From contig QPMI01000658.1 in NCBI GenBank assembly GCA_004431415.1, positions 124,001 to 188,000 of the forward strand: a stretch of 64,000 nucleotides of DNA, written 5' to 3'. Positions 13,137 through 33,400 of this stretch are shown here, piece by piece (the stretch's first letter is position 1; each line of letters opens with the position of its first letter). The notes under the pieces are model-generated. The model was not told the DNA's origin, searched no databases, and was given only the letters and a program-made list of their open reading frames with translations. The DNA is from Cyanophora paradoxa CCMP329 (taxonomy: Eukaryota; Plantae; Glaucophyta). The translations under genes were made by a program, and so were the position numbers.

Positions 13137-13550
13137 GCCCCAGCTCGCCTCTACCCGTCCGCTGTACCGTTTTTTCAGAATGTCTGGCCTCGCGCGCGAT
13201 CGGGCGCGGTCGCTGTGATCACACTAGTACTGCAGATGCGCGCGGGGGCGGCCGCGGGCCGGCCCGGCCCGGGGGCGGGGGCGGGGGCAGACGGCCTCGG
13301 GCCCCGGGAAGAGGCCCGCGGCCGCCGGCCGCCGGCCCCTGCTGGCCTGGCCCCTCAGGCGCCGGCCTGAGCGAAGGCTGATCATGAGCCTCGATCTCGA
13401 ATTTCGAAGGCTCCAAATTTAGAACTTCGGAAGCTCATGCAAGCTCGCAACGGAGCCGGATTCCGGTCCCAATTTCAGGATTCCGGAGCGCTCCGCAGCC
13501 TCCGCTGCGCCCGAGATCGCGCATGCGCAGGCTGCGCAGCGGATCCGGTA

Positions 13551-15242
13551 CCGTAATGCAGAATATTAAGGTCTGCACTTTATTATGTCGTCCCGAAATT
13601 ATGTCGCCTAAAACTCGGCAAAACGACATAATTTGGGGACGTCATAATACGTGCACGCTAAGTCGCCCCGGGCGGAGTTGAACCCTTGCGCCCTCCAGCC
13701 TCGGCGCGGGAACAGCGAGCGCTAGCGACGATGAAGCAGAAGGCCGAAGGCAAAGGCTTGTTCGGTAAGGACAAGGTGCCGAAGTTGCAGCAATCGATCA
13801 CCAAGCTGTTCAACGTGCTGCCGAAGGTCGAGAAGCCCTTGCCGCGGGGCGCGCTCGACGCCAGCAAAGCCAGCACGCCTGAGCAGGCTGCCTTCCGCAA
13901 GCGCGTTGCTAGCGAGCTTGAGAAGCGCGAAGCGAAGCGTCGGGCCGCCGCCGCGTCGCGGCTGCCGAAAACGCGCTGTTCATCCTCGCGCGAGTACAAG
14001 TCGTTCGCTGCTGCTCTTGCGCTCAGTTTTGTGGCCAGCGACGCACTGGAGCATTTAGAACGCGTGCAGTCTATCCTTTCAGATCACAAGCGAGCGCTCG
14101 CGGAGGGCCAGCAGCAGACGCCGCCCGTGGCGCCCACTATGGCCGAGAAAGACGCCGCTTTCCTCAGGTTCCTGGCTGAGCGCTCCGGGCTCGCGGTTCC
14201 CGCGTACGCATCTCTGCCTAAGCAGCTTCCCGACGAGCGGTCCCTGCAGCGCTGGGCGAAGCAGCTAAAGGAACAGCTAATACCTTCGCGCCTCACTCGA
14301 TGTCGCAGTCGAGAAGGTGCTGGTCCCGTGGCGCGACGAGGTTCGGGCGCGCGCCGAGAACCCGGACCTGCGGCCAGTTATCGTGCTCGACAACCACGTC
14401 TCGCACACGAAGAACACGAAGTACATGGAGGAAAGAGGCTTCACGCTCCTCTGGCTGCCCCCCCGCTGCAGCTGTGCGCCTCCGGATCACACCCGCGCAC
14501 GCGCGCGCAGCTAAGCGGTTCCTGCGCAGCGGCGCTTCAGCCCCTCGACCAAGCATTCAACAAGGCGGTCAAGGAGATGATGCGGAGGGAGCTGGCGCTG
14601 TACCTGGTCGAGCTGCGCCGGCGCCGCAAGGTCGCCGATGAGCGGGTCGCGGACGGCACCCGGGTCGCGGACGCGGCGGCGGAGTCTGCAGCTATCAGGA
14701 ACAAGTTCGGAACCTTGCCGCAGGCCCGCGAGCGCTCGGTGGCATGGCTGGCCAAGATCTGGAACAAGATCAGCGACGAGCTCGGGCCGATGGTGCAGGG
14801 CTGCTGGCGCAAGACCGGCTTCTACAACGCTGCGTGGCCTGGGCGGGCGGGCGGCGAGGCGCCGGCCGCGGAAGCGACTTCCGCGGAAGCGACTGCCGAC
14901 GAGCCCGACATCGAGAACGAGTCCGATGTAAGCGACACCGGCCTCAGCGACGCGGAGGAGCTGTCGAGCTCCAGCGACAGCGAGGACGAGGACGAGGAGA
15001 CCTTCGGCAACGAGGACGCCTAGCTAGCTAGCTAAGTCCGACCCTGGCCTCTGAAAGACTAGAACCCAGGACTCTCAGCAGTTGTTGGTCAAGATTTCTG
15101 ACACCCCCCCCCCCAATTTTACCGCCCCATACAAGGCTGAAAATTTCATGCCGACATAATTTGGGGACGTCATAATTCGCATAGAGAAGGCTCGGGTTTT
15201 AAAACGACATAAATTTGCATGACATAATATTGTGTATTACGG
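13551..15242 (+). mobile_element. pogo-like (Tc1/mariner superfamily) DNA transposon, internally deleted
   Basis: TIRs CCGTAATGCAGAATATTA (13551) and TAATATTGTGTATTACGG (ends 15242); TA target duplication at 13549-50 and 15243-44; subterminal ATTATGTCG/CGACATAAT repeats at both ends; DDE_1-type remnant inside. Confidence 0.9.
13731..15023 (+). pseudogene. Defective DDE_1 (pogo/Tigger-type) transposase
   Basis: VIVLDNHVSH..FTLLWLPPRCS-[intron 14474-14529]-SALQPLDQAFNKAVK..GCWRKTG with an acidic tail. The frame breaks near 14278 and the first catalytic Asp region is absent. Confidence 0.85.
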
Positions 15243-15995
15243 TACGTGCACCGACCGTGCACGGTGGACCGTCAACATCGCGGACTCGCGGTCCCGGCCG
15301 GCGTCACCGACTCACCGTCCCGGCCGTCCCGGCGGTCCCGCCGTGACGGCGCCGTCCCGGGGCCCGGCCGCCCGGGTACGTCTCCTCCGAGGCTCGCGAA
15401 TGATCCGAATCGGAAAAAAAGAGCTTGACTGCGGTACTCGGTAGCTCGCGCAACGGAGCTATCGGATTCGGAGGTTTCTTCGGAGCTCTCGAGCGGGGGG
15501 GGCGAGTCCGGGGGGACGCGGATCTGCGTCACGGCGATCCCGGCGACCGCCGGACGCAGGAAGCAATCTGCAGTGTAACACTGTAACTGCCGCTGGCTTC
15601 GGAGCGGGACACGTAAACCGCGGTGCGTGCTCCGGAAATTCGGCTCGAATTCTCTAGCGCGAGCGCTCTCTACCTAGCGAGCGCTTTAGTCTTGTTTGTC
15701 AGTTGCAGCAACCGACCGCGGGCCGGGAATCGCGACCTGAAGCGTGCGCCAGCCGCCGGCGCCCCGCCCGGCCGCCCGGCCGGCAGGCTCGCTAAACGTG
15801 CCAAAAGCCTAAGTGTCGCGCGTACGCATACATTCGAATTCGTGCTCGGCAGTGCGTGGGCCGGGCCGGGACGTTTTAGACTGATAGCTGGCCCCGAGCC
15901 GGGGCCTGCAATTCTCCGCCCTAGCCTGCCGGCCGCGGCCGCCGCTGACCCGCCCGCATCCGCGTACGTACGCAGGGTCGCTCACTTCGAAGGAA

Positions 15996-17188
15996 ATGGG
16001 GCGTCGCGTCAGCGGGGGGCTCGCCCTGGGCGCCCTCCTCCTCCTCCTCTCGGCCTGTCTGGCCCTGGCCCAAGTCCCTGCGGACGCGCCCGCCGAAGCC
16101 CCGCGCCCGATCCTCGACGCGGAACTCGTGCGTCGACGCCCTCCCCGGCCCGGCCCGCCGGCCGGCCCGCTCAACTTTCGGAATGGGCCGCCGGGCTGCG
16201 ACGCTTGACCCGATTGAGCGGACGTTTGCGCTGACGTCGCCGAGAGCTGGCTTTTACATCATAGAGTTTCATTTTGAGCCCCAAGGAAGAATTTAGAGCG
16301 TCGAGATTCCCGCGTCACCCGGTCTTTTTGGATTTCTAAACGCGGGCCGGCCGGGCGCAGCCGAAATGCAAGGATCTGGCGCCCAGCGCGGAGAAGGCGT
16401 GCTACCCCAGTGCGCAGAGCAGACGCCGCCCCTCCCTCTCTCATTCTTCAGACTTGTCATTCTTCTGCAGCCGCTTACGACCTCTTCGCGACCGGCGCGC
16501 GGGTCTTCGGCATCGACGACGCGTGCACGAACAAGCAGCCGGCCAACAACTACACCACCGCCGGCGGCCAGGGCATCGACAGGCCGCAGGCCGGCCTCAA
16601 GATGCGCCGCGTCAACCGCGTCGTGATCAAGGGCCGCTCGAACGCCGGGCCGTGCGCCCGCCCCACCCCCCGGCCCCGCCCCGGGCCCCCCGGCCCTGCC
16701 CGCCCTTCCGATCCCGAGCTGATCCGAGCTCTCCGGCCGCCGCAGGAACTTCTGGACCTACAACGCGAGTGCGTGACGTCCGTCGCGATCGCCGCCTCCG
16801 GCTCCGACTCCGACGTCGACGCGCAATCGATTGCGCCGGCCACGGCCAACACAATGCTGATCCTGTACCCCGCCCGCCCGCAGACATGCGCGCCGTCCTC
16901 CATCCCATCGCCCTCAAGGACGGCGACGCCGACGCGACAGGGGACGCCCTCGCGGCCAAGTACAAGTGCCGCATGCCCCCGTGAGCCCCTCCCCGCCCCC
17001 GCCCCCGCTCCCGCTCCCGCCCCGTCCCCGGCCCGGCGGTCCCTCGTCTACTTCCCCCCCATGAGCCCCGTACGGCTCGGCCCGGCCGTCCCTTGTCTAC
17101 TTTGCCCCGTCCCCGAGCCCCGTACGGCTCGGCCCGGCCGCCCCGGCCGTGAGCCCCTCCCGCCCCCGCTCCCGCTCCCGCCCCCCCC

Positions 17189-17237
<49 letters not shown>

Positions 17238-17552
17238 CGGCCCCGGCCCCGGCCCCGCTCCCGCCCCGTCCTTCTACTTTGCCGTCCCTCCCCGCCCCGC
17301 CCCGGCCCCGCTCCCGCCCACGCCCGCCCCCCCCACCCACCCCTCCACCCCCCCCCCCCCACACACACACACACCCTCCCGCCCCTACTTTGCCCGCCCC
17401 CGCTTCCGCCCCGCCCCCGCCCCGTCCCCAGCCGTCCCTCGTTTACTTTGCTTTCTCCGACTCGGACTGACCGGCGTCGGCTTTTGGGAACGCAGGGCTC
17501 CCGGCTCGGCCCCCGCCGGGCAGCCGCAGCCGACCCCGGCGCCGGCCCCCGC

Positions 17553-17584
<32 letters not shown>

Positions 17585-20500
17585 TGCGCATGCTCTATTG
17601 CAATAATTAATGTTCAGTGCTTGTAGTTCTGCCGAGACCTTTCATATATGATCATGAGCGCTTACAGTTCTGCCTCCGCAGCCTCCGCAGCAGAAGCGCG
17701 GCCTCCTGCAGACCCCCGCGCCCCAGCAGCAGGCGGCCGGCGCGAGCCCCCCGCCTCCGGTCAACCAGGAGCTCCCGATGTGCTTCGGCATCCTCCGGTG
17801 AGCTGAGCTCGCCGCCGAACTCTTTTAACCAAGACTCTTTTGAAGTCTTTTAACGTTATTATTCACGCATAACGAACTCGAGCTCTTTTAGCCAACACTT
17901 GAGGCCGCAATTTTGAGACAGAACTATATTAATATAATGTATACATACTCATCAACCCACCGAACTCATTATTAACCTAGACTTGATCATGAAGCCGAGC
18001 TCTCCTTTGTGAACGTTGACCCTGGAGCGCAGCGCCTTCCCCAACTGCTCGTACGACGGGACGATCGTCCTCGAGTACTTCTCCCACTTCGCCGGTGCGA
18101 GTTAGATTCTTTATAATGCTTTTATATGCTTTTCATAATGTTTCTATATGCTTTTTAGACTCTCCTGATACATATATGCTTTTCTGATTCCGAGCCCGGT
18201 TTCCCTTCGACGCGCAGGCTCGTTCCGCCTGGACCTCAACCTGACGGTGCCGCATCCGGACGGGAACCCACGCAACATGCCCGCCGACAAGGTGCGCCTT
18301 CTTCTTAAGTTCGAGCCTCCGAACTTGTGTCGACGTCGGGCTCATATCGCCCCCGCCTCAATGCGCAGTCCCCTTTCACGGTCAACGTCAAGCCCGGTCC
18401 GCACTCGCGATCTCCACGCTCTGCTTTAGTATCTCTCGGAGTCTGACGGCGGGGTCGTACGCACGCGTGCAGGCCCCACCGACGCCCGTGCGGGTTTCAC
18501 GGCCCGCGGCATCGACGTCCAGTTCACCGGGTGAGCGCTCCTCTTCATATTTAGATGCATCATGGCATGATCAGCGCCGCCCGAATGTGAACGCTGACCG
18601 CCCTAAATCTCGTGCTTAATCATGATCATATAAGCAGAAGCTCTTGAGCTCTTTATAGCAGAAGCTTAGCGATGCTCAACACTAACTCGCTTCTTCCTGC
18701 AGCATGACGAACATGCCCAAGGCGAATGCGGCCGGCGAGGTAGCCTGCAGCGAGTACTTTGTCGCGGAGACGATAGCGGCCCTCGGGGGAAGCACCGCGC
18801 CACCGGCCTGCAAGTGGCGCACCCCGGATGTCCTCCAGGCACGCCAGCCTTTTCTCTCAAGCTTACGCTTATATATGCTCGAGCTTGGCAAGCCAAGTTA
18901 AAATCTAAGCGAAACTAAAATCTCAATCAATAAGCGAAGCTAAAAGCTAAATTAGCTATAGCATCTTTTATATTTAATTTAACGATGCGCCTATGGCGGC
19001 CGCGGCGCAGATCGACGTGCAGGTCTCGTCCGCCGTCACGATCCAGCAGCAGAAGCCGCCCCAGCTGAGCTTTGTCGCCTCCAACGGCATCTCTGCGACG
19101 GGCTACGCGTCGAACCCGCTCGGCGCCTACGTCGTCCCCGTCATGTCGTTCCAGGAGGCGCAGGCCATCATGCAGGGCGAGCAGAAGCAGCAGGGCGCGC
19201 CGCCGGCGGGCCCCCAGCGCGACGAGAAGACCCTCGTGGGCGCCATCCTCGCCCTGAACCTCAAGCCCCGCTACACCGCCTGCGAGCCGGTCGAGGCCAG
19301 CATCGCCGGCCAGAACAACGGCGGGTCCGCATGCGCACACTCGAATTGCAAATTGATACATGTCCTCTGCTCGCCTCTGTGCTCATCTCTTCGATTCGGG
19401 TCGATCGCTCGCAGGACGATCAAGTGGACTCTCACGAGCAGCAACGCGGAGCTGACGGAGGACGCCAAGAAGGAGCTCGAGAAGGGGGCGGACGGCAAGC
19501 GCCCCAACATGCGCTTCAAGGACCTCAAGTCCGGCACCTACGTCATGTCGGTCAGTTAATTAACGTTAACTGAATTTCGAAGTTGTAAAGTAGCCTTACA
19601 TACTAGAAATTTGGATCCTACCTACAACTAACTAGTGATGCCTCGCTGAACAGGTGACGGTGACGACGCGCACGGCGGGCGTCCTCTCCGCGAACCGCAC
19701 CTTCGAGAAGCTCAGCGGCAACGTCCTCACCGCCTCCGCCTTCGTGCCCTTCACCGAGAAGACCGTCGCCCTCGACGGGACGCGCGTCGTCCTGGACGGG
19801 CGCCCGCAGTACCCCAAGAAGTGCCCGGGCGTGGGGGGCTTCTCCGAGCAGAACCTCACCGAGTCGTACAAGGTCACGTGGCGGCGCGACGCCTCCTCGG
19901 CGGCCTTCGCCGCGAACTCGCCCTGCAAGGAGGACACATGGGAGCGGAACAAGTGGGACGTGACGGACTGCCTCGCGCCGGGCGCCACCTACGTCTTCGT
20001 GTTTAAGGTGGAGGTCAAGGGCTCGGCCGAGGTCGATGAGAAGCGCGTGACGCTGACCGTCATCGCGGGCAAGCCGAGTGCGGTCATCGCCGGGGGCTCG
20101 TCCCGCACGGTCGGCGTCGCCAGCGACGTCGCGGTCGAGATGCGCGCGCCCGACGAGTCGGCCACGTACGCGTGGGCCTGCAAGGGCGCCGACGGCACGA
20201 CCGCCTGCCCCGAGAAGCTGCTGACGGCGCTCGCCGGCGCCAAGGCCAAGGTCTCGATCCCCAAGAACACGCTCACCGAGGCCAACGCCGGCTCCTGGGT
20301 CCTGACCGTCACGGTCACGAAGAACGGCCAGTCGGCGAGCAGCGCCCAGACCCTCGTCTACGTCGCCGGCGAGGTCCCGAACCTGGAGATCAAGGCCAAC
20401 CTGCCCCTCTACGCCCGCCCGGCCGCGGCCTTCGGCCTGAACTTCGGCGTTGGCGGCGTCAAGAAGGAGGACGCCTACACCTTCGCGTGGACGGTCTTCG

Positions 20501-23500
20501 TCACGGAGACCAGCGCCGTCCTCTCCGTCGACGGCATGAAGGACGACGACTACACGAAGCCCGGCCTCCGCTTCCCCCCGAACGCGTGCGGGCCGTGTCT
20601 TCAATTTCCGAATTTCCGCAGCCAAGGCCGACGCGACGTCGTCGGCAGGTTCCGGACGCAGGCGGAGAACGGGCAGGCGATCACCGTCCAGGTGGTGGTC
20701 AACGGCAAGTGGACCCTCCAGCAGGCCGCCTCCTTCGTCAAGCCCCCGACCTGCTCGTGCGCGCTGCCCCGGCCTTCTTCTTTGTTTTCTCGCATATATA
20801 TTTTCGATGCCGGCGCCCGTGCACGTGTGCCCGATTCTAATTCGCGGCTTCTTCAGTTTCTTATATGTTTCTTCAGCTTCTTATATGTGTTCTTATATGT
20901 TTCTTATATGCGCGCCGCAGGTCGTCGCCGTGCTGCACGTACTCGGGCGAGGACAAGCTGTACGCTTCCGTCTCCCAGATCACCGTCGCGTGCTCTGGTG
21001 CGTGAAATTAAACCTCCCGGTCCGCCCTTTAGATCTAGATCAGGCTTCGCCTCGCGTCCGACGGTCTGTCTGCATGCCGCGCGCGGCGTTTGACGCGGCG
21101 CGGCCTCGCGCGCGTGTGCGCAGGCTGGAGCAGCGACAACGAGCTGGGCTACGAGGCGCGCCTGCTGAAGCCGTCCATCACGGACGCGGAGCTCTCGAAC
21201 GCGCTGGTCGTCCTGAACCGCGACTCGTCCCGCCCGCTCGCGCCCCCACTCCCCAACCCGAGCATCACCTTCCGCCTCCCGCCTACGGGATCGACGACCG
21301 CCGCCACGTACCGCGTCCTCGTCGGCGTGGTCGACCTCTTCGGCTCGCGCTCGTACGAGATCGTCTCCATCGCCAACGTCGAGCAGCCGTCCGTCGCCGA
21401 GAAGGCGAGCGAGCCCGTTTTCTACTTCAGGATATATATCTTGCTTTAACTTCTGTAGAAGTCATATTACCCGAAACCTTTTAGCGACTTCCCGCCCCGT
21501 TCTTTCATTCTGGAGTCGGCCGTCGTCTAACGGGGGCTCGCGGTCGGGCGCAGAATGCGTTCTTCGATGAGACCCGCGGCGCCCTCAACGCGTTCGTCAA
21601 GAACCCGACCGGTCCGAAAATCGCCGATTTCCCGAAATCCATCGAAATCGCGCCGGGCCGCGTGCTGACTCTCGCTCGCTCGCGCAGGCGACGTCGACAC
21701 GTGCGCTCGCGATTGATTTTATAATATTTCCGTAATATAGCCGCTAGCTACATAGCGAACGATTAATATATAATATATATAATAGACGAATATAGCCGTA
21801 ATATAATATATAATAGACGCGAACGAATATAGCCGTAATATAATATATAATCGCTGCGTCCTGCGCCGCGTGCTGATCACCGGGCTTTGGGGCGGCAGCG
21901 TCTGGTCCCAGATCTCGCAGCTGAGCGCGGCGACCACGACGGCGAACGCGACCTCGAAGCGCATGCGGCGCATTCTCTCGCTGTCGAGCAGCGGCCGCCG
22001 CCTCCTGCAGTCGACGGCGCAGTCGAACGCGCAGACGATGCTGGCGGCTGCCAAGGCGGCGCTCGACGCCAGCACCGCCACCTCCACCACCCTTCTTTCC
22101 GCCTCGGACAGGTGCCGGGACTTCTCGAAAGCATCTTCCGAAAGCACCTCTCACGCGGCTGACGTGGCTGCAATTTCACTTTGATTGCGACAGCTTCCTC
22201 ACCGCCACGCAGTCGGTGGCGGTCAGGTTCGCCGCCTCTGCGGCCCCAGTCGCTCGCTAGCGCTGGCGCCGCCATGACGCGCGGGGCGGGGCGGCAGCGG
22301 CGTCAACGTGAACCTTCTCGATGTCTCGCCCGCCACGACTCTGCTCGACGCCATCGTCACCGGCGTCACCGTGCGCCCCATCTGCTATATATATATATAG
22401 CTACCCGCACCCCACGCCACTTCACCCGCGGCCGACGCTGCAACTGATCATGATCATGGCGCCCGAAATTGACGGACGGAAATTGACGGAAATTGACGCC
22501 CCCGCGCGCGCGCAGAAATTGGCGGACGCGTCGGAGCAGGCGACGGTCTGCAGCTCGTCGCTGCCGAACCAGCTCGTCATCGGCGCCGGCTTCGTCCTCG
22601 GCGGTGCGTGCTACGTATAAGATAGATAAAATCTACCAAATCTATAGCTAGATCTTCTAGAAGATACAGAGATGTTGTTTGAAATCGGTGCGCGCGCACC
22701 AAATCTAGATTTCCCTCGAAATTCCCCCTAGATCTAGATAGATCATCCTCGGCGGTGCGCGCCCGCATCAAATCGAATCTAGATCTTCTAGAAGATACAG
22801 AGATGTTGTTTGAAATCTAGATCTTCTGTTCTAAAGATCGAATCTAGATCTTCTGTTCTTCTGCTTAATCGAATCTATATCTTCTAATCGAATCTAGATC
22901 TTCTGTTCTACAGATTTCGTTCGAAATTCTGAGTTCTGAGTTCTCGGCAGGCACGACGAGCTACGCAAGCCTGAGCCCCCAGACGGCGGTGTACGCCAAG
23001 CTGACGGCGCTCGCCAACTGGCTCAGCAGCACCTGCCTGACCGCGGACGCGGCGGCGAGCGCCTACCCCGCGACCGAGTCGAACCTGCTGAGCAGCGTCC
23101 GCTCGCTCCTGTACATGGAGGTCCGCAAAGTCTAATTACTGTTTCTACCAAGTTTACGACGATAACCTATGTGTATTTTTATCCTTTATTCTAATCGATA
23201 ATATGCATGATAGGTCCGCCGCGTCACGACCGCCGCCACGGGCCTCGGCACCGCCACGGACTACACGCTGCCGCCCGCGGCCATCACCTTCACGCCCGCC
23301 GTGCGTCCTTCGATCCGAATTTCACGAATTTGAATTTCGTGCCGTCCTCTGACGGGCGGTTTCACGTCGACAGAGCTCGTGCCCGCGCGTGGTTGTCAAG
23401 CTCCCCGCGGCACTCGCCTCGGCCACCACCGAGACGAGTGCGTTGCCCCGCCCGGCCGCGGCCCGGCCCGCTTTTGATTTCCATACGATTTCGCCGCAGC

Positions 23501-24066
23501 CGTTACTGTTGTTCACCTGCACACTTGCAACGCGCGCTTCTACGGGAAGGCCACCGGCAGCGCCTTCGTCAGCGGCGCCTGGTCGTTATCGCCCGTCGTC
23601 GGCGTCTCGCTCCGCAAGACGGACGGCACCGAGATCGCCGTCAACTCTGTCAGCACCAACGTCACGCTGGCGATGGCGCCCGCCGCCGCCGCCGTCACCG
23701 GCATGCACTCCTCCCGCGACGGCGCCGCGGTCCGCTCCTTTCATCTGACCCAAAGAGCCTTTATATGTAAATGCATTTAGTAAAAAAATCTAAACGTGCA
23801 TGTTCGGGCAGGTTTTCGCCGTCGACGGCCTCTCGGGCGCGGCGTCGGACGCCAGCGCGACGGGCACGGCGGGCCACCTGACGGACTTCGCGTTCACGTC
23901 GGCGACCAGCACGCAGAGCTCCTCGCAGCAGGCGGGCACGACCACCGGTACCGGCACGACGACGAACACGACGACGACGCCCAAGAACGCGGCCGGCGCC
24001 CTCGGGGCCGGGTTCCTCCCGACGTTCTTCGCCGCCGCCCTCGCCCTCGCCATGCTGGCGCTGTAG
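15996..24066 (+). CDS. Secreted polycystin-1/REJ-like surface protein with GAIN/GPS motif and C-terminal GPI-type hydrophobic tail; many exons
   Basis: Signal peptide MGRRVSGGLALGALLLLLSACLALAQ. REJ-like exons (LAPGATYVFVFKVEV, PSAVIAGGSSRTVG, TYAWAC, YRVLVGVVDLFGS). GAIN-B-like SPVVGVSLRKTDGTEIAVNSVSTNVTL; GHLTDFAF with HLTDFA at 23875-23892; Thr-rich spacer; terminal NAAGALGAGFLPTFFAAALALAMLAL-stop. Confidence 0.8.
16981..17400. repeat. Intronic low-complexity block: poly-C, (CA)n and a repeated GAGCCCCGTACGGCTCGGCCCGGCCG unit
   Basis: Seen directly within an intron of the REJ-like gene. Confidence 0.8.
21719..21850. repeat. AT-rich intronic tandem repeat (AATATAGCCG(TA) / ATATAATATATAAT units)
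   Basis: About three imperfect copies visible. Confidence 0.75.
22620..22925. repeat. Intronic tandem repeat of AATCTAGATCTTCT-type units
   Basis: Multiple imperfect copies; TAGATCTTCTAGAAGATACAGAGATGTTGTTTGAAATC occurs twice. Confidence 0.75.
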
Positions 24067-25140
24067 ATCTCGATCTAGGCGAATTATTGAGATTCAATGA
24101 TTGGTGAGTACTAAATTACAGCTACCGCTGTGTTTCGTTTTCGGGTTTCGGTGTCATATTTAAATTCGAAAGCCTGAGCAGAGTCTGCATCTGTTCGGCT
24201 CAACCGTTGAACCCGATTAAACTAGGGGGAGCGATTGGCGAGAGATCTAGACCGAAGCGCTTGACACGAGCTAGTACGCATCGTAATGCAAATCTAATAT
24301 AATGCTCAGTCTCTCGCGGACGCGGTACAAAATTTTCCTAGATGTAAGGCCATACAAAGGCGACGAGGAAAAGGCCAGTTTCGCGGCGAGCTAGCCGAGC
24401 TAGCATGCGCGCAGCGCGCCCGGTCGGCGTCTTATTGCCCCAGCGTTCGAATCCCGGGAAGGGCAGTTGGAGGGAGCGGGGGGGCCTGGGCGGGCCTTGA
24501 GCTGCCTTGGGCTGAAGAGGGGGCCGGGGCGCAGCGACCTCCGAGCTCGAGGCCAACTTTCGCGCGGCGAGGTTCTGGCGGGAGACCAAAAATGTTTTTC
24601 ATCTCGGCTGATCTAAAACGCACTTCCTACCTGCCCGGTCTCGCGCCAGTCACTCGCTGTGCTCCGCTTTAATTTAATTTCGGCTGGACTTGAATGGCAT
24701 TTTTCGATCAACGACCGATCATATGCATGACCCATCATCCCGAGTCGCGACCCATCGCGACCGTCGGACACGCGATCGCGAGTCGTAAGTTACTCCGAAC
24801 TTACTCGTAACTTAAGAGTCCGACGGTCGTACTGCCGTAAGTTACTCGTGAGTCGTAAGTTTCGTAACACGTGCAGTGGTCGTGCAGTGGACGTGCACTG
24901 AGTGCCACACTGCCACTGATTCAGTGACTACCTGTAACAGTAAGTTGGGGGCTGTAAGTTGCCTGTAAGGCTGTAACTAGTAATATAATTACAATTACAA
25001 TAGACTGCAACTGCAAGCGGCCGGTTCGGAAAACTTCGAGGTTTCAGAGGCCTAAAAGCACGTCTGAATCTGTAAGATGTGCAAATCTACTCGATTTCAA
25101 AAGTTTAGATCGGCGCGGAGGGGCCGGCGGCCGGGCGGGC

Positions 25141-25690
25141 AGGGGGGCGGGGCGGGCGCACGGCCCGGCGTTCGAGCGCTACGAGTTATGGGCCTTAGGC
25201 GGAGTTTCCTGGCGAACTGGGGCCAAACTCCAGGGGCCTGAAGCGGCTGGCAGATCTTGCCCTTATGTAAATTAGCTACCGGGTAGGTTCTAGTAGCCTC
25301 CTGGTACAGTCCTAGTAACCGCCGGCTAGTAAGTTAGCAGTAACTGCCAACAGCAGCTTTTATATAGCATGTGAAATATACCGGCACGTGCCCAATCGGA
25401 AAACACTGGCATTTTCAAGTCGAATTAGTACGGGGACCTCGACGGTCCCAGCGCAGTACTAATTTGAGTCAAAAGGTGTTCCCAGTCTAAAACTCGGCCG
25501 AGTTTTAGTCAATCGACTTGACTCGGAAAAAGTTTGTATGGCGGAAACTGCGCCTAAGGCCCATAACTCGTAGCGCGAGCGGCCCTTGATCACGACGCGG
25601 TTGACGCGGCGCATCTTGAGGCCGGCCTGCGGCCTGTCGATGCCCTGGCCGCCGGCGGTGGTGACTCAGTGAAGTTGTTGGCCGGCTGTC
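25141..25690 (-). pseudogene. Inverted relic of a paralog of an early exon of the REJ/GAIN gene, split by a TIR element
   Basis: The reverse complement of 25576-25688 plus 25150-25176 matches 16536-16665 (QPANN..TTAGGQGIDRPQAGLKMRRVNRVVIKGRSNAGP and the GTGCGCCC donor). Confidence 0.85.
25177..25575. mobile_element. 399-bp non-autonomous TIR element (superfamily unassigned)
   Basis: TIR of about 33 bp, CGCTACGAGTTATGGGCCTTAGGCG(G/C)AGTTTCC. TSD CGAG at 25173-76 and 25576-79, or 2-bp GA if the termini are one base longer. The uninterrupted sequence is the exon at about 16630-16650. Confidence 0.9.
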
Positions 25691-26418
25691 TAGTCGGCGT
25701 CGGCGTCGACCGGTCGAGTCGTCGACGTCGACGGTCGACGTCGACTCGGCGACGCCGTCGAGTCGCGACTCGCGAGTCTCGCGACTCGCGAATCGCGATC
25801 GGCGAAGTACGTTGCTGCTTTCGAGAGGAATTTTATTTCAAATTTTCCGACCTCCGACTCGGGCTCCGAGGAGCGGGGAAAGGTCGAACTTGAAAGGTTG
25901 AGTCAACATGTGCGATTTAATTCCAAGTTCATAGACGTGACGCGGCTGACTCAGTGACGCCAACTTGAAATCACTGAGTCACTGATCATATGCATATGAC
26001 GGGGTGGATAATAATTTAAGATTTATGTGCCATTGGCAGTGACTTATAAATTAGAGACTCATCACTGCCAGGCTGATTAAATATTGACACGGCCCATTAA
26101 TTGAACGTAAAATGTCGGACCGTCTCGATCTCGGAAGTCGATCCGACGTCCGACGGTACCGGTCGAGTCGGGTCGACGCCGGACGTACCGTTAGTGGTCC
26201 GTCATCGGCGTCACGTACCGTGACGTACGACGTCGACGACGACGTCGCGACTCGCGAGTCGCGACCGGTAATCGGTGTACTAATCACTCAGTGATCATGA
26301 GTCACTGAGTAGCACTGATCATGAGTACTAATCAGTGCTCCGTAGCCCTAGACAGTCCCCTAGTAGTACCGAGTACTACGGCGAGTAGTACCGGTACCGC
26401 CGGGCCGGTATCATACTA

Positions 26419-26683
26419 CCGTAAAACACAATATTAATTCGCACGATATTAGTTCGTTTTTAGACCCGGACCCCGACCATAGTAATTAGTTCGGTCTCAA
26501 ATTAGTGCTTTATTCGTTTTCAGTGTATGGGGCGGGGGGTACACGTTGTACCCCGTACCCCACCAGCATTTTCTTAGCGTCCTGTAATTAGTGCGGTCTC
26601 AAATTAGTGCGTTTTTACGGCAAAAAACGCACTAATTTGGTACCGAACTAATATTATGCGCGAACTAATATTCTGTCTTACGG
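26419..26683. mobile_element. 265-bp pogo-type MITE
   Basis: TA|CCGTAAAACACAATATTAATTCG ... CGAACTAATATTCTGTCTTACGG|TA; internal ATTAGTTCG/AATTAGTGC repeats; termini resemble the 13551-15242 element. Confidence 0.88.
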
Positions 26684-27420
26684 TAGTACTACGGTCGTAT
26701 CACTACTAGTAGTATGTGCCGCCGACAGTGCCGGCCCGGCGGGCACTGCCTTACAAGTTAGTGCCGGGCGGCACTGCCGGCCCGGCCCGGCGGCGGATCG
26801 ATCATCGCGCGGCGGCCGATTCATCGGCGATGCCGCACGCACTGCATGCACGCGTACGGCAGTGCCGCGTCATGTGCGGCATGCATACTATGATGTGTGC
26901 CTGCCCGGCCGCGCCCCGGCGGTCCACGCGGCGGAATCCGGGCGGCCCGGCGGATATCGAATCATATTATCGATGTGCATGCGCATGCGCATTGCGCATG
27001 CGCAATGCCACTGTGGCTGCGGTGTTCCCTCGGCCCGGCGGCGCCGGCGCGGCCGGCGGAATTCGAAGTTCAAAACTTGAAAGTTTCACGCACATACTCT
27101 GAGAGTCAGCCATGGCCAGTGCCACGGTGAGCCTTGACTCAAGCTTGGACTCCGGGTCCGAGTCCGGGAGCGAGCCGCGGCCCGCGGAGCGCCGCTCGAG
27201 CTCACTGAGTCAGCGGCTGTTCGCTTCAAGCTTAAGGCCTGCGCATGCGCATGCAACTTGATGCAAGCCTTTGAAGTTGCAGTGGTCAGCCGAAGATCCT
27301 CCAGCCCAAGCGCACTGCGGGCCTGCGGGCCAGCTCAGCGGCTGCAGGCCGCGGCATTGCATGCGCAGCGCTCAGCAGCTTATATTTATTCTTCGCGGGA
27401 ACATTTCAGATACTCATAAG

Positions 27421-30400
27421 ATGCCGCAAAGGAACCAGCGGCTGGCAATGTCAGCCTTGTTGCTGAAGTCCGTGCTCCTGCTGGTTGCGTTTGCGGCCGC
27501 AGCAGTCGCGGCTTCGACCATCCCTCCGAGCAACGTTGACACCCGCGAGACAAAGCACGCTCACCGCTATCACGGTTTCGATGGTTCGGGCGGTGCGCGC
27601 GCGGCACGCACTGATTGCATTTCATTAATATGTTCGCGGCTAACATTAATATTCCGCCCGTAGCGCCATCGGGCTCATTTGTCGGGCGGGCGAAGGGCGC
27701 GGCGCCGCAGCGGCTCCTCGGCTGGGACGCGAAGCGGACGAGAGACCACTCGACGGGCCACATCCACTGGCACACGGCGAAGGACTTCTCCGATGTCTCG
27801 GGCCGGCGCGTGCGCTACAACGTCAACGCAGTGCAGAAGGCGCCGGGTGGGCGGCCCCTAGGCCTGCTCAGCCGCGCATTCCGTTCGGTCGCCTAACTTT
27901 ATTCCCGAGGAAATTTAAACCAGTGGTGGACCTCAACGTCGAGCCTGCGGTCCTCGCCGTCGATTGCTCGGGGTCGCCTGACCGAGTCGACATTCTGCTG
28001 GAGGCAGGACGCAGCCTGGCCTTCGCCCCTGGAGCGTGCGTTCGGCGGATGCGCAGATAGGATCAAGTTGATAATTAGATTCAGGGCCTTTAAAAATGCG
28101 CATTCACGTAATTATGTACTTTGATTTCTTATAACATGCACACGGCCGCAGGATTGTGGTTGGGAGTGAGATCTGGTGCCCTCTTGACGTTTTCAAGCGA
28201 GATCTAGAAGCCCCCTCTGTTTAATTTGCGATCGCGATCGCTCACGCGCCCTGCAGGAAGTGCCCCGCACCAGCGTCGACGTCGCCAAGCGCCACGTCCC
28301 GCAGCGTCGAGTCGCTGGTGGCAGGCCTCATGGTCCGCGTGGTCGGCGTCGCTTATGAGGATTGCGAGCTGCAGCTGGCCATGGCCATGGCCGCCGGCGG
28401 TCGGCAGCAGCGGCTCCGCGGCACCTGCGCGCGGCTCACGGCCGAGCCGGCCTGCCTGGGCGACATCTTCGAGCACCTCGAGATGGACTACTACGAGCGG
28501 GAGAAGGACAAGGCGTGGGCCCCGCACGCGGCGCGCGGCGCGAAGCACCGCCCCGCTGGAGGCTCGCAATCGGATGATATCGATGGCAGCGACGCGCACC
28601 GACGCCTGAGGTCGCCTTTCTTTCAATGCATGTCGACTGCCTTTGTTGCTGCCGCCGGCTAATCTGTTCGCAATTGCAACCTCAGCACGCAGCTCGCATC
28701 GCTCGAGTCCCTGCAATCGCGGAACGACACGATCCTTGACTCCTTCGCGCGTCTGAGTAAGATCTCAACGGCCAGAAAACATGCGAGTTCGTGCACGTGA
28801 CCTGAGACAAGCACGCAGAGCAACGCACGACAAACGTGGCTCGGCCGGACTCCCCGCAAACTCGATCGAGAAATCTACTATTCTTCAAATCTCTCAAAAA
28901 ATGTTGGGCATTCGAACTCCGGTCCGCGCGCGGCCTCCTCGAGTTGAGTTCTGAGACTCGGAATTAAACGCAGTTGTAAAGGCGGTGGTGAGCGTCACCA
29001 AGACGGTTGCATCCGTCGCCGTCAAGAGCGTGGTCTCTGCAGTTGTGAGTCATGTGCATTTTATGCGCGACAGTCGCCGCTGACGAATTTCGTTCGAAAT
29101 CCGATCCCAGCGCGCCAGCACGACAGCCGTTAAATACGTTGTGAACAAAGCCAGCGAGGGCGTCAGGACAGCGGCCGATGCGGGAAAGAAGGTTGTCAGC
29201 TCGGGGGTAACTTACGCGAACAAGGGGCTCGACAAGGCACGCGCTTCCGCAACCACCTGCTGCAGCTGCCTACGTCCGATTCGCTAATTTCGCTCTGCGA
29301 CAGTTCGATCAAGTCACGGGAGGCCACCTCAAAGTTTTGACGGGCCCGGCGAGAGTGGTGGTCAATGGAGTGGGGTCGACCATCATCAACGGTCTGGACA
29401 CGGCAGTGAAGCTGTCAGACAAGGCCGCAAACGCAATCACTACCACTCTCACGGTGGTCGAGTGCGCGACAGGTGCTGCGAAATTTTTTTATCGAAATGC
29501 TGTCTCTGGATCGCGGCCTAGCGTGACGAAACGCACATGTACAGGCACGTGTGAGCTGCCGATCAAGGACACGCTACGGAGCGTCACGTTTAACTACGAC
29601 GAGCGCCGCCAAACGCAGTTGAATAAGGTGACGAGACTGCCGCTCGAGAACGCTTGGTCTGATGGCTGATCATGAGCCGCCCGCGCCCGCCTGCAGCTGC
29701 AGCCGATTGGCTTCCAGTACAATGTGGCAAAGTCCAAGGGCTCTCTAGCCGCTTCCGCCGCGGCGGAGATCATGTTCGATCCCGAGCAGCTGTACTATCA
29801 CGCCGGCGTCGGCGTCAAGATGAAGCTGGTTCTCAAGAACTACAAGATTCTGGATTTCACTTTCCACGGCCCGCCCGACGTCGACGCATCCCTCACAGTG
29901 AATCCCTCCGCGCTTATCTTGCGCGCGCAGTCTTTGCCGAGTCGAAAGCGCGCATAAGCGGATCGCTCGAAGTCAGCATTGAGATCGCCCTCGAGGCTAT
30001 GAAGGAGATCTACTCGAAGGAGTTCACCCCGAAGGCCATCGCCGTAGGTCTGCCCGTCGACGTCGACGTCGGCGTCGTCGGTCGTCGGCGCTGTGGAAAC
30101 GCCTATCTAAACTCTAGCCGCCTCGCAGGCCCCATCATCTTCACATTCCAACCCAGTGTGAGTCGCGCGAACAAGCTTAAGCGCACACCTCTTCCCAGTC
30201 GAATCGCAACTGATTCGGAGCCGGTCTGATCGTTTTCCTTTGCAGGTTGCGGTTCGTGACACACTGCAGCTGTGACATTCAAGCCGCCGTCGAGCACATC
30301 GAAATGACTGCTTACTCTGATCGCAGATAAATATGGGATTCTCCGGAGAAATCAGCTTCAGTCTGCAAGTGAGTCGGCAATCTCTTTTACAGATTCTGGC

Positions 30401-33400
30401 CGATCATAACACTGCTCTCCTTGCAATTGCAGTATGTGGTCGATGCCAGCTTCGAGGTACCCCCCTCTAGATTTCTGCGAGACAACTGTAGTGCGAGTAG
30501 ATCTAGATCGATGTGCGACTGCTCTGTTCCCTCAGATTGGAGTCCAGGCGGGCGCCAAGTACGCTAATGGCAGGCTTGGCCCTGACGTCAGCTGGTGCGC
30601 GCTCCTCAGTTACTCTTCACTCAAGATCCTCCGGATCCCGGCCCTGATATCGATGTCTTTCTTCGCAGGCTGGACAACAAAGCGCCCGTCGTCAAAGTAG
30701 CGAAGTCAGAGCTCTCCACTGAGCTGAGTGAGCGGCTTGCACACAATCTTTAGGCCGTTTGATCCGATATTCTTGGCGATCAGGCTTGGGGATCTTCTTT
30801 GTGTTCGAGCCGTCGATAGGGATCACGGCGGGCGCATACGGCGTGCAGGTCATCGGTGCGCGACAGCGGCCGCAGCTGTGCGGGCGCGCGGGGCCGCCGG
30901 GCCGATCGATCGAAGCGCTCACGAATTCGAACACTGTTCGAGCGCAGGCCTCTCAACTGGGGTGACCTTCCGGGCAGGATTCATCTGGACTCCGGTACTC
31001 GCTTTCATTTCCCTCTGGATCTATCCAGCTGCGCATTCGAATCTCTAGATCTAATACAGCATCTCCAGGTCAGTCCGGACTGCAAAGGAGCGAAGAACTT
31101 CCGCATATCTGCGTCGTGAGCACAGGCCTTTAATTTCGCATGCGATCTGAGAGCCCCTGATGGGACGCGCGCGCGCAGAGTTACTCCTTTCCTCGGAATG
31201 ACCCTCCAGGTCCCCCCCCCCCCCCCCCCCCCTCTCCTTATGTATATAATTACGGCTTCCCTTCCAGGTCACCACCATTGTCAAGAGGCCATCCACGGTG
31301 CTAGCCGTGACAAGGACCGGCTGCCGGAGCTTCGATGCGTCCTGGACGCTGGACGGCGTTGCTGCTGTCGGCGGGGTCAACCTCAGGAGCATTGTTGTGC
31401 AGGTCAGACCCCAGCTCCGCGTTCCGAAGCCATTCGGCCATTGATGCGTGATCTCTGCATGCGCATGCGCAGGTGACCGCCGATTACGCTGCGGAAGCAG
31501 TGCCGACAGGACGGTACCCGCTGAAGACCGCCTACCAGCAGACCACCTCGCTGAAACGGCAAACGACGTTCGTCACCGACGGCGTCACCACCGGGGGCCG
31601 CCACATCTCGACGAACGTGTCCGGGCTCTTCCCGCCGACGTTCAAAGCGGCGGGCGCCGTCTCGTACACGTTCCGCGTCTGGGGCTACGCGGCCGTTGGA
31701 TCCGGTCTCGTCTCGAACAGCGTCGCCATCCGTGACGCCGCGGAGCCGTGCGTCGCGGAGGTCGCAGAACTTCCGCATATCTGCGTCGTGAGCACAGGCC
31801 TTTAATTTCGCATGCGATCTGAGAGCCCCTGATGGGACGCGCGCGCGCAGAGTTACTCCTTTCCTCGGAATGACCCTCCAGGTCCCCCCCCCCCCCCCCC
31901 TCTCCTTATGTATATAATTACGGCTTCCCTTCCAGGTCACCACCATTGTCAAGAGGCCATCCACGGTGCTAGCCGTGACAAGGACCGGCTGCCGGAGCTT
32001 CGATGCGTCCTGGACGCTGGACGGCGTTGCTGCTGTCGGCGGGGTCAACCTCAGGAGCATTGTTGTGCAGGTCAGACCCCAGCTCCGCGTTCCGAAGCCA
32101 TTCGGCCATTGATGCGTGATCTCTGCATGCGCATGCGCAGGTGACCGCCGATTACGCTGCGGAAGCAGTGCCGACAGGACGGTACCCGCTGAAGACCGCC
32201 TACCAGCAGACCACCTCGCTGAAACGGCAAACGACGTTCGTCACCGACGGCGTCACCACCTGGGGCCGCCACATCTCGACGAACGTGTCCGGGCTCTTCC
32301 CGCCGACGTTCAAAGCGGCGGGCGCCGTCTCGTACACGTTCCGCGTCTGGGGCTACGCGGCCGTTGGATCCGGTCTCGTCTCGAACAGCGTCGCCATCCG
32401 TGACGCCGCGGAGCCGTGCGTCGCGGAGGTCGCGCCCACTGCGACACCCTCGCCGAAGCCGACCGCCGTCGGCAACCCGGCGCCGACGCCGACGTCGACG
32501 CCGAAGCCCGCGGGGCCGGTCCCTACGTATACGCCCAGCTGCAGTTTGACGCCCAGCCCTACGCCGAGTTCGACGCCCAGCCCTTCGGCCACCCCGTTGC
32601 CCGCCAATCACCTCTTCGTCACAAAGAATCCAAGCGTAACCGGTACCAAGCCATCGAAGCGGGATGGGCAGGTGCGTTAAACTCTCCAGAGCAAGTTTTC
32701 GAGTTCCGCTTGCAAGCAATCCACGTCACAGGGCGTTGGAGTTACGTACAATGGAGCCGAAAGCCTCTTTGTTGTGGTACATTTATCTTCTTAGGTTCCT
32801 CCAAAACATTCGATCCTCCAGGGAACATTCGATCCTCCAGGGAGGCGCCTGCTTGAAGGATTTTCCAAGTACGGATTATTCAACTCCAGAAGAAAGAGCT
32901 GCCGCAACCTGCTCCGGACAAGCTAGTGCATACTACCACAAACTGCGATTGGACGTCGGTAATTATAAGATAAGACGTGTTGAAGCGGTCGATTGCTGGC
33001 TTCGCTTATAAATACTGATATCGATAATTACATTTCTAATAATTACATTTCCTTCCCACAGTCCCTCCTGCGTGGGAGACGGTCAGCTTCCCCGCTGGTC
33101 TGGAGATCGAAGAAACGGTGAATATTCGCAAGCGCTAGCGCTGCGTCGTAGGGCGCGTTAGCGAGAATGGCCCCTGAATCGGTTGAAGAGGAGGTCAAGC
33201 GTAGTTTACGATGGCCAGCGATACATATACGCGCAAGGCGGTACGCGCTTGGCCGTGCTTCGAATTCGCTTAAGCTTTCACTGCCGATTAGCGTCGACGT
33301 ACTAAGTTCGTTCATGCTCAATGACAGGATACCATCCCGCGGACGGATCCCTCAAAAATTCTGTTCTACGTTTTGGTGCGCGAGCATTCGCAATCGCCGC

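Follow-up and report, generated by a model that had tools for sequence, protein, structure and literature searches.

The GAIN domain and its GPS cleavage site are mostly viewed as a means of presenting a tethered agonist to a 7TM bundle or to the polycystin core. According to a 2025 survey (PMC11697300), GAIN/GPS is known from two families only, adhesion GPCRs and PKD1-like proteins. The locus described here, from the glaucophyte Cyanophora paradoxa, raises the question of whether such a module may also stand in an ectodomain that ends in a lipid anchor and carries no signalling domain. An earlier note on this DNA had proposed such a protein, namely a polycystin/REJ-like ectodomain with a cysteine-free GPS site, self-cleavage, a GPI-type tail and force-dependent shedding.

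Gene structure and transcripts

The window, which is the whole stretch of 64,000 nucleotides that was analysed, is GC-rich eukaryotic DNA in which introns are short and AT-richer. The gene corresponds to tig00021572_g22411 (EukProt tig00021572_g22411.t1), and its public protein model of 1073 aa is referred to as P0001. It extends from about 15996 to 24066 on the plus strand, comprises roughly 30 exons and is transcribed. Its parts are as follows:

15996..16087, plus strand: putative first exon, opening with a signal-peptide-like sequence, MGRRVSGGLALGALLLLLSACLALAQV (ab initio exon-chaining script only)
17496..19550, plus strand: upstream coding exons, before or missing from the annotated start (in-phase GT/GC-AG chain)
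17496-17583, 17691-17797, 18033-18094, 18218-18291 and 18369-18396, plus strand: upstream exons 1-5 of 9 (exon chain)
18473-18530, 18703-18838, 19011-19324 and 19415-19550, plus strand: upstream exons 6-9 of 9 (exon chain)
19654..20585 (932 bp), plus strand: large exon with the core of the REJ domain (Pfam REJ; identical to P0001 residues 157-466 at 100% identity)
20649-20756, 20921-20997 and 21124-21404, plus strand: exons that complete the REJ-like region (RNA joints in X6 and X7)
21554-21611, 21688-21700, 21899-22111 and 22194-22226, plus strand: exons 1-4 of 7 of the mostly helical region (RNA joints in X6 and X7)
22298-22370, 22516-22603 and 22951-23120, plus strand: exons 5-7 of 7 of the mostly helical region (RNA joints in X6 and X7)
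23214-23300, 23374-23437 and 23500-23729, plus strand: exons of the strand-rich region (RNA joints; alignment with the paralog P0002)
23730..23811, plus strand: phase-0 GT..AG intron within the GPS-like stretch, between RDGAA and VFAVDG (spliced RNA contigs)
23812-24066, plus strand: last exon (stop TAG at 24064-24066)

The RNA and DNA contigs of four public runs (X1, X3, X6 and X7) were aligned to positions 20000-25900. X6 and X7, which belong to one study, each contained a contig of about 3.4 kb that skipped every intron from 20586 to 23811, so that the intron downstream of the large exon (20586-20648) is confirmed by RNA. X1, which comes from a different study, gave perfect pieces of two exons. 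Run X3 was colinear with the window, intron 23730-23811 included, and is therefore DNA. The same intron was spliced out in X6, where the shorter flank of the joint measures 71 nt, and in X7, where it measures 27 nt. Exon 23500-23729 (frame 0) reads ...VTVVHLHTCNARFYGK...VTGMHSSRDGAA, and its part from 23541 onwards joined to 23812-24063 (frame 1) translates to ...VTGMHSSRDGAA / VFAVDGLSGAASDASATGTAGHLTDFAFTSATSTQSSSQQAGTTTGTGTTTNTTTTPKNAAGALGAGFLPTFFAAALALAMLAL, followed by TAG. This is exactly the C-terminus of P0001, and the peptide, its split point and its stop had been read correctly in the earlier note.

The spliced contigs of X6 and X7 also established a GC-AG intron (21405-21553) and a micro-exon of 13 nt (21688-21700), and presented 22604-22950 as one single intron. 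The transcripts lack both the ASEP of P0001 and its 20-residue stretch DLDRSSSAISFEILSSEFSA, which falls in a gap of the alignment between P0001 and P0002. The ASEP (4 codons, 21405-21416) and the stretch DLDRSSS...EFSA (about 20 codons, within 22604-22950) are retained-intron inserts in the P0001 model.

The 5' part of the gene also departs from the public annotation. The annotated ATG of P0001 lies at 18993, and 18993-19010 is intron on the exon chain. Measured along the transcript, the X6 and X7 contigs start 1298-1299 nt before position 20000 and so pass the annotated ATG by about 484 nt. On the exon chain, the 5' ends of both contigs would fall at a (CAG)n run near 17547, presumably a natural spot for an assembly to break. 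The chain was traced in phase by the ab initio script to an ATG at 15996, where it opens with a typical signal peptide; none is present in the public models P0001 and P0002, and a signal peptide at 15996 is thus a prediction of the exon chain. The public gene model looks wrong in three places, with a truncated N-terminus and the two retained-intron inserts. The domain and fold analyses below refer to P0001 as published, with the ASEP and 20-residue inserts and with a shorter N-terminus than that of the exon chain.

Several other features were observed along the window. One predicted exon contains a (CAG)10 run (17555-17583) that codes for poly-Q, apparently the point at which both RNA contigs break off. 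A large intron includes long tracts of low complexity at 17150-17400, made up of poly-C, (CA)n and CCCCG-rich sequence, and a further GC donor at 18839 appears in the exon-chain model only. Upstream of the gene, 13548-15245 is transposon-like: terminal inverted repeats (13548-13606 and 15152-15245), with 30-nt outer arms that are 80% complementary and 25-nt inner arms that are 92% complementary, enclose an ORF of 445 aa (13686-15023, plus strand) that had no significant match in Pfam. Downstream, the summed contig depth of the DNA run X3 rose from about 28 to 6,900-64,000 at 24137-24727 and was 600-1,200 at 25122-25712; highly repeated sequence therefore begins about 70 bp past the stop of the gene. 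ARAGORN detected no tRNA in the repeat region (24137-24727/25122-25712), although a stretch near 24446 resembles GGTTCGAATCC. The plus strand also contains two nearly identical stretches that look coding (31452-31802 and 32120-32677); both start with SLHAHAQVTADYAAEAVPTGRYPLK and had no match in Pfam, and the second runs on into a Pro/Thr/Ser-rich region. A second copy of the gene was not found in the window by tblastn with P0001 and P0002.

The REJ domain and a distant paralog

The coding part of the large exon (19654-20583) matched the Pfam REJ profile (PF02010) with an E-value of 2.9e-14 and 53 bits, against a cutoff of 25. P0002, a second Cyanophora paradoxa protein (EukProt tig00000980_g6139.t1, 1065 aa), matched the same profile over positions 11-416 of 452 (E 3.9e-20, 72.3 bits), and a precomputed PF02010 assignment is present for P0001. 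The Pfam scan of full-length P0001 listed no REJ, unlike the scan of the exon, and bias filtering is suspected. As the REJ match lies above the Pfam gathering score, placement of the protein in the PKD1/REJ family is supported at the level of the sequence, in agreement with the polycystin/REJ-like ectodomain that had been claimed earlier. Beyond REJ nothing was recognised: PLAT and PKD-channel gave zero Pfam matches in P0001 and P0002 at E-values up to 10.

Relatives of the protein proved to be few. A HMMER search of 1.84 billion proteins with the 310-aa exon 19654-20583 returned four at E < 0.001, namely P0001 (100% identical), P0002 (28% identical) and two weak short hits, and therefore no deep alignment could be built. 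Between P0001 and P0002, homology extends over the C-terminal halves (29% identity, E 4e-27), and no relative other than P0002 was detected for this half of P0001. Word-index protein searches with the REJ exon, P0001 640-1073 and a two-sequence profile returned P0001 alone, and a feature search of the ESM Atlas with the C-terminal halves of both paralogs gave no result. In a metagenome scan, 600 patterns were matched by the C-terminal alignment, of which none was confirmed, and an exact look-up of the P0002 locus found no record.

The HLT site and the region ahead of it

The candidate cleavage site lies in the last exon:

23875..23895, plus strand: H1011-L1012-T1013-D-F-A-F, candidate GPS cleavage site (L/T) with its tethered strand (conserved in P0002)

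The cleavage consensus H-L-[T/S]-x-F-A is present in both paralogs, as H1011-L-T-D-F-A-F in P0001 and as H1016-L-T-L-F-A-F in P0002. Apart from x, every residue of HLTxFAF is invariant between the two and stands at the same place, in proteins with only four His residues each. By chance, a protein of such composition should contain H-L-[ST]-x-F-A 3e-4 times. Given that the full H-L-T triad is conserved in two distant paralogs, the site is argued to be under selection. The earlier description of an intact H-L-T-x-F-A with the GPS Cys and Trp replaced fits these data: P0001 has no Cys beyond residue 922 and no Trp beyond residue 940, which leaves the GPS stretch without either.

The four cysteines (two disulphides) and two tryptophans that are canonical for the GPS (PMC3321182) were not found in P0001, and P0002 keeps W995, at -22 from the P1 Leu. 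The site region of P0002 reads ...SSADGGASWSEVGFAGVTRDGTTLSGTSTHLTLFAF and retains W995-S-E-V-G-F1000, with F1000 17 residues ahead of the P1 Leu. In rat latrophilin-1 the disulphides are C801-C832 and C820-C834, and P1 is L837 (Arac et al., PMC3321182). The corresponding positions, counted from the P1 Leu, are occupied as follows:

-22: W995 in P0002, F991 in P0001 (aligned)
-17: C820 in latrophilin-1, F1000 in P0002, L996 in P0001 (aligned, at -16)
-5: C832 in latrophilin-1, G in P0002, G in P0001
-3: C834 in latrophilin-1, S in P0002, A in P0001

The loop before the site is one residue shorter in P0001 than in P0002. At position -22, latrophilin-1 has the Trp of the GPS consensus W-S-x-x-G-C. 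Judged by its residues, a GPS-like pattern is recognisable, with hydrophobic or small residues in place of the cysteines, and the W-S-x-x-G-F of P0002 at the distance of the second GPS cysteine supports a cysteine-free GPS. Further upstream, four cysteines are conserved between the paralogs (768/792, 834/838, 894/895 and 922/924), and the strand-rich region contains the conserved pair C894/C922, a VHLHxC motif and an SxDG Asp-box-like turn.

The turn before the site also fits the sialidase Asp-box S-x-D-x-G-x-x-W, as SADGGASW in P0002 (985-1000) and SRDGAAVF in P0001 (983-996). The sialidase Asp-box matches were considered as an explanation and account for the SxDxGxxW turn of P0002, not for the whole region. 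RGMs are autoproteolytic, GPI-anchored proteins, and an RGM C-terminal fragment was matched among the PDB sequences (E 0.015, 18.8 bits). This match was rejected as chance or generic beta-sandwich likeness because the aligned part follows the cut in RGM and precedes the HLT here, and because the score is low.

The position of the site within the protein can be compared with that in known families. In every known REJ protein the GPS comes after REJ and before the first membrane segment (PMC1934368; PMC3321182), and the GAIN domain sits immediately ahead of that segment (PMC3321182). In P0001, about 380 residues, modelled at low confidence as helical and then strand-rich, lie between REJ and the site, and the only hydrophobic segment follows directly, with 36 residues from the P1' Thr to the hydrophobic end (23 in P0002). 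The PKD1 GAIN has up to eight subdomain-A helices (PMC11697300), and the size and the helix-then-strand order of the Cyanophora region appear right for a GAIN of the PKD1 type. The region encoded at 21554..23120 would be the candidate for subdomain A and that at 23214..23729 the candidate for subdomain B.

The succession of REJ, helical/strand region, HL/T site and first hydrophobic segment, together with the H-L-T triad, is shared with polycystin-1 (PKD1) and PKD1-like proteins. Unlike PKD1, the Cyanophora protein has no PLAT, no 11-TM region and no channel-like domain, it has no Pfam GPS match, and its GAIN is a candidate only. It likewise resembles the GAIN domains of adhesion GPCRs (latrophilin-1, 4DLQ; BAI3, 4DLO; PMC3321182) in that H-L-T-x-F-A ends a region of about 380 residues, modelled as helical plus strand, directly ahead of the membrane, and in the W-S-x-x-G of P0002 at the canonical distance. 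It differs from them in lacking the 7TM, the two bracing disulphides and any sequence or fold match.

Searches for a GAIN domain by profile, sequence and structure gave little. Pfam GPS (PF01825)/GAIN had zero matches in P0001, P0002 and their C-terminal parts at E-values up to 10, and profile and single-sequence searches of the PDB sequences returned zero GAIN chains. The AlphaFold model of P0001:610-1073, built from a two-sequence alignment, had a pLDDT of 40.3 and displayed helices followed by strands, with some helices alone at pLDDT 70; the helical region 21554..23120 reached a pLDDT of 55-78 at best. For P0002:858-1032, also from a two-sequence alignment, the pLDDT was 38.5, and the strands were seen in low-confidence AlphaFold models alone. 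A Foldseek search with this P0002 model (pLDDT 38.5) gave a best match at E 2.2, with 4DLQ at rank 23 (E 4).

The absence of GPS/GAIN matches in Pfam and among the PDB sequences, the missing canonical cysteines (all four) and the missing Trp of P0001, the AlphaFold models without a confident fold, and a P0002 SxDxGxxW turn that resembles sialidase Asp-boxes as much as a GPS speak for another reading. Here, the C-terminal region would not be a GAIN domain, and HLTxFAF would be an uncleaved conserved strand in a lineage-specific beta domain of a plain adhesion or matrix protein. We consider this rather unlikely, since the motif lies precisely where REJ proteins have their GPS, behind REJ and directly ahead of the only hydrophobic segment, the H-L-T triad is invariant at 29% identity in paralogs with 4 His each, and the W/F-x-x-x-G-hydrophobic spacing agrees with the numbering of the second GPS cysteine. 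Homology of the helical-then-strand region to GAIN is instead regarded as probable, given this arrangement and the modelled order of secondary structure. Whether the site is cut is a separate matter. GAIN cleavage is described as an N-O acyl shift, and the cleavage turn of known GAIN domains is held by two disulphides (PMC3321182). As both bracing disulphides are lost here, cleavage is uncertain, and autoproteolysis at H-L/T, as suggested by the conserved motif, is possible and somewhat doubtful.

The C-terminal tail and a candidate tether

P0001 ends 61 residues past the HLT site, and its single hydrophobic segment lies at the very C-terminus. No 7TM domain was found after the site, nor a PLAT and 11-TM/channel-like region. 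The tail consists of two parts:

23896..23985, plus strand: Ser/Thr-rich stalk, TSATSTQSSSQQAGTTTGTGTTTNTTTTPK (56% S+T over T1013-N1048)
23986..24066, plus strand: GPI-type C-terminal signal with omega N1048-A-A, spacer GALGAG, 17 hydrophobic residues and TAG (rule-based check)

The 36 residues from T1013 to N1048 are 56% Ser/Thr, and the stalk is probably O-glycosylated. P0002 has no such stalk, and its linker measures 23 residues. Small omega sites, a spacer and a hydrophobic end with no further residues form the pattern of a GPI signal and not that of a stop-transfer anchor. Both paralogs conform to the omega, spacer and hydrophobic rules of the rule-based script. The last charged residue of P0001 is K1047, and P0002 ends in G1041-A-A, PALGPA and 16 hydrophobic residues, with zero charge in its last 30. 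A search of the literature on GPI in Cyanophora found no relevant paper. On these sequence features, GPI anchoring is slightly favoured.

Two other readings of the C-terminus were weighed. The hydrophobic end of the same ectodomain could be a true C-terminal TM helix of a tail-less type I protein, as the final 25 residues in P0001, and some 32 in P0002, suffice to span the bilayer and REJ proteins with one TM exist (SpREJ1, 8, 9; PMC1934368). Zero residues, charged or not, lie beyond the hydrophobic stretch, and small residues occupy omega, omega+1 and omega+2 in both paralogs (N-A-A in P0001, G-A-A in P0002), 24-25 residues from the end; this makes a TM helix a less likely, still appreciable, alternative to the GPI signal. 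The 3' end itself might be incomplete, with a rarer isoform in which the last exon is joined to TM exons lying downstream. Contig assembly drops rare isoforms, and the two RNA assemblies that span the 3' end come from one study; an X6 contig covering 23861-24079 nevertheless passes the stop, the depth past 24136 is zero, and neither a joint nor a loose end leads out of the last exon (23812-24066) in the X6 and X7 contigs, which end at 24079. Moreover, 24100-27600 held no coding-like stretch of at least 40 aa on either strand, and P0002 ends in the same way. Such an isoform is highly improbable, and splicing on into TM exons, which would have refuted the earlier proposal, was not seen in these assemblies.

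The layout without a signalling bundle is not unprecedented. In the sea-urchin REJ family, SpREJ1, 8 and 9 have one TM, one member has two and SpREJ10 has no predicted TM (PMC1934368), and such a layout therefore has precedent within the PKD1/REJ family. The rule that GAIN/GPS precedes a 7TM or 11TM region, on which the earlier note had relied, is accordingly incomplete. As in SpREJ1, 8, 9 and 10, the Cyanophora protein carries REJ and then a GPS-type site near a single anchor, with no PLAT, channel or 7TM, and, as proposed here, it may be likened to the SpREJs as an extracellular adhesion/recognition protein. It differs from the sea-urchin proteins in its glaucophyte host, in a GPS stretch without the four canonical cysteines and in a GPI-signal-like anchor without cytoplasmic residues; C-type lectin and PKD repeats were also not detected in it.

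The reading that we favour, and consider fairly likely, is that of a secreted PKD1/REJ-family protein with a divergent GAIN domain, a cysteine-free GPS-like site and a GPI-type tail. Its parts would follow one another as an N-terminal region, REJ, about 380 helical-then-strand residues, HL/TDFAF, a mucin-like Ser/Thr stalk and a hydrophobic C-terminus. The helical-then-strand region would most likely be a divergent GAIN domain, and the tail most likely a GPI-attachment signal with omega near N1048, so that the outer leaflet of the membrane would display an O-glycosylated, secreted REJ ectodomain that lacks a channel, a PLAT domain and a 7TM bundle. Were the site cut in the manner of polycystin-1, only non-covalent contact with the buried TDFAF strand of a lipid-anchored glycopeptide (about 36 residues) would retain the large N-terminal fragment, and force could pull this fragment off. 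Of the interpretation first offered for this DNA, the REJ-like character, the conserved Cys-free HL/T-x-FA site and the GPI-type tail have stood; the GAIN fold found no backing in Pfam or the PDB sequences, and shedding is what we infer from the proposed arrangement. That the protein combines a self-cleaving GAIN-type module, free of disulphide brace and signalling bundle, with a GPI-held REJ ectodomain as a purely mechanical, force-releasable tether is a speculative proposal, to which we assign a low probability.

For now these observations are of limited value, since fold, cleavage and anchor are inferred and REJ proteins with one TM or none were already known from sea urchin. The novelty lies in the glaucophyte lineage, in a GPS without cysteines and in a GPI-type end that has no cytoplasmic tail. 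The analysis corrects the public gene model and adds an expressed Cyanophora member to the REJ proteins. Such a protein would also make two questions testable, namely whether a GAIN fold can cleave without its disulphide brace and whether the GAIN/GPS module can have a stand-alone mechanical or shedding role. If the proposed tether is true, this early-branching alga would provide evidence that strand-held shedding, and not agonist exposure, was the older use of GAIN.
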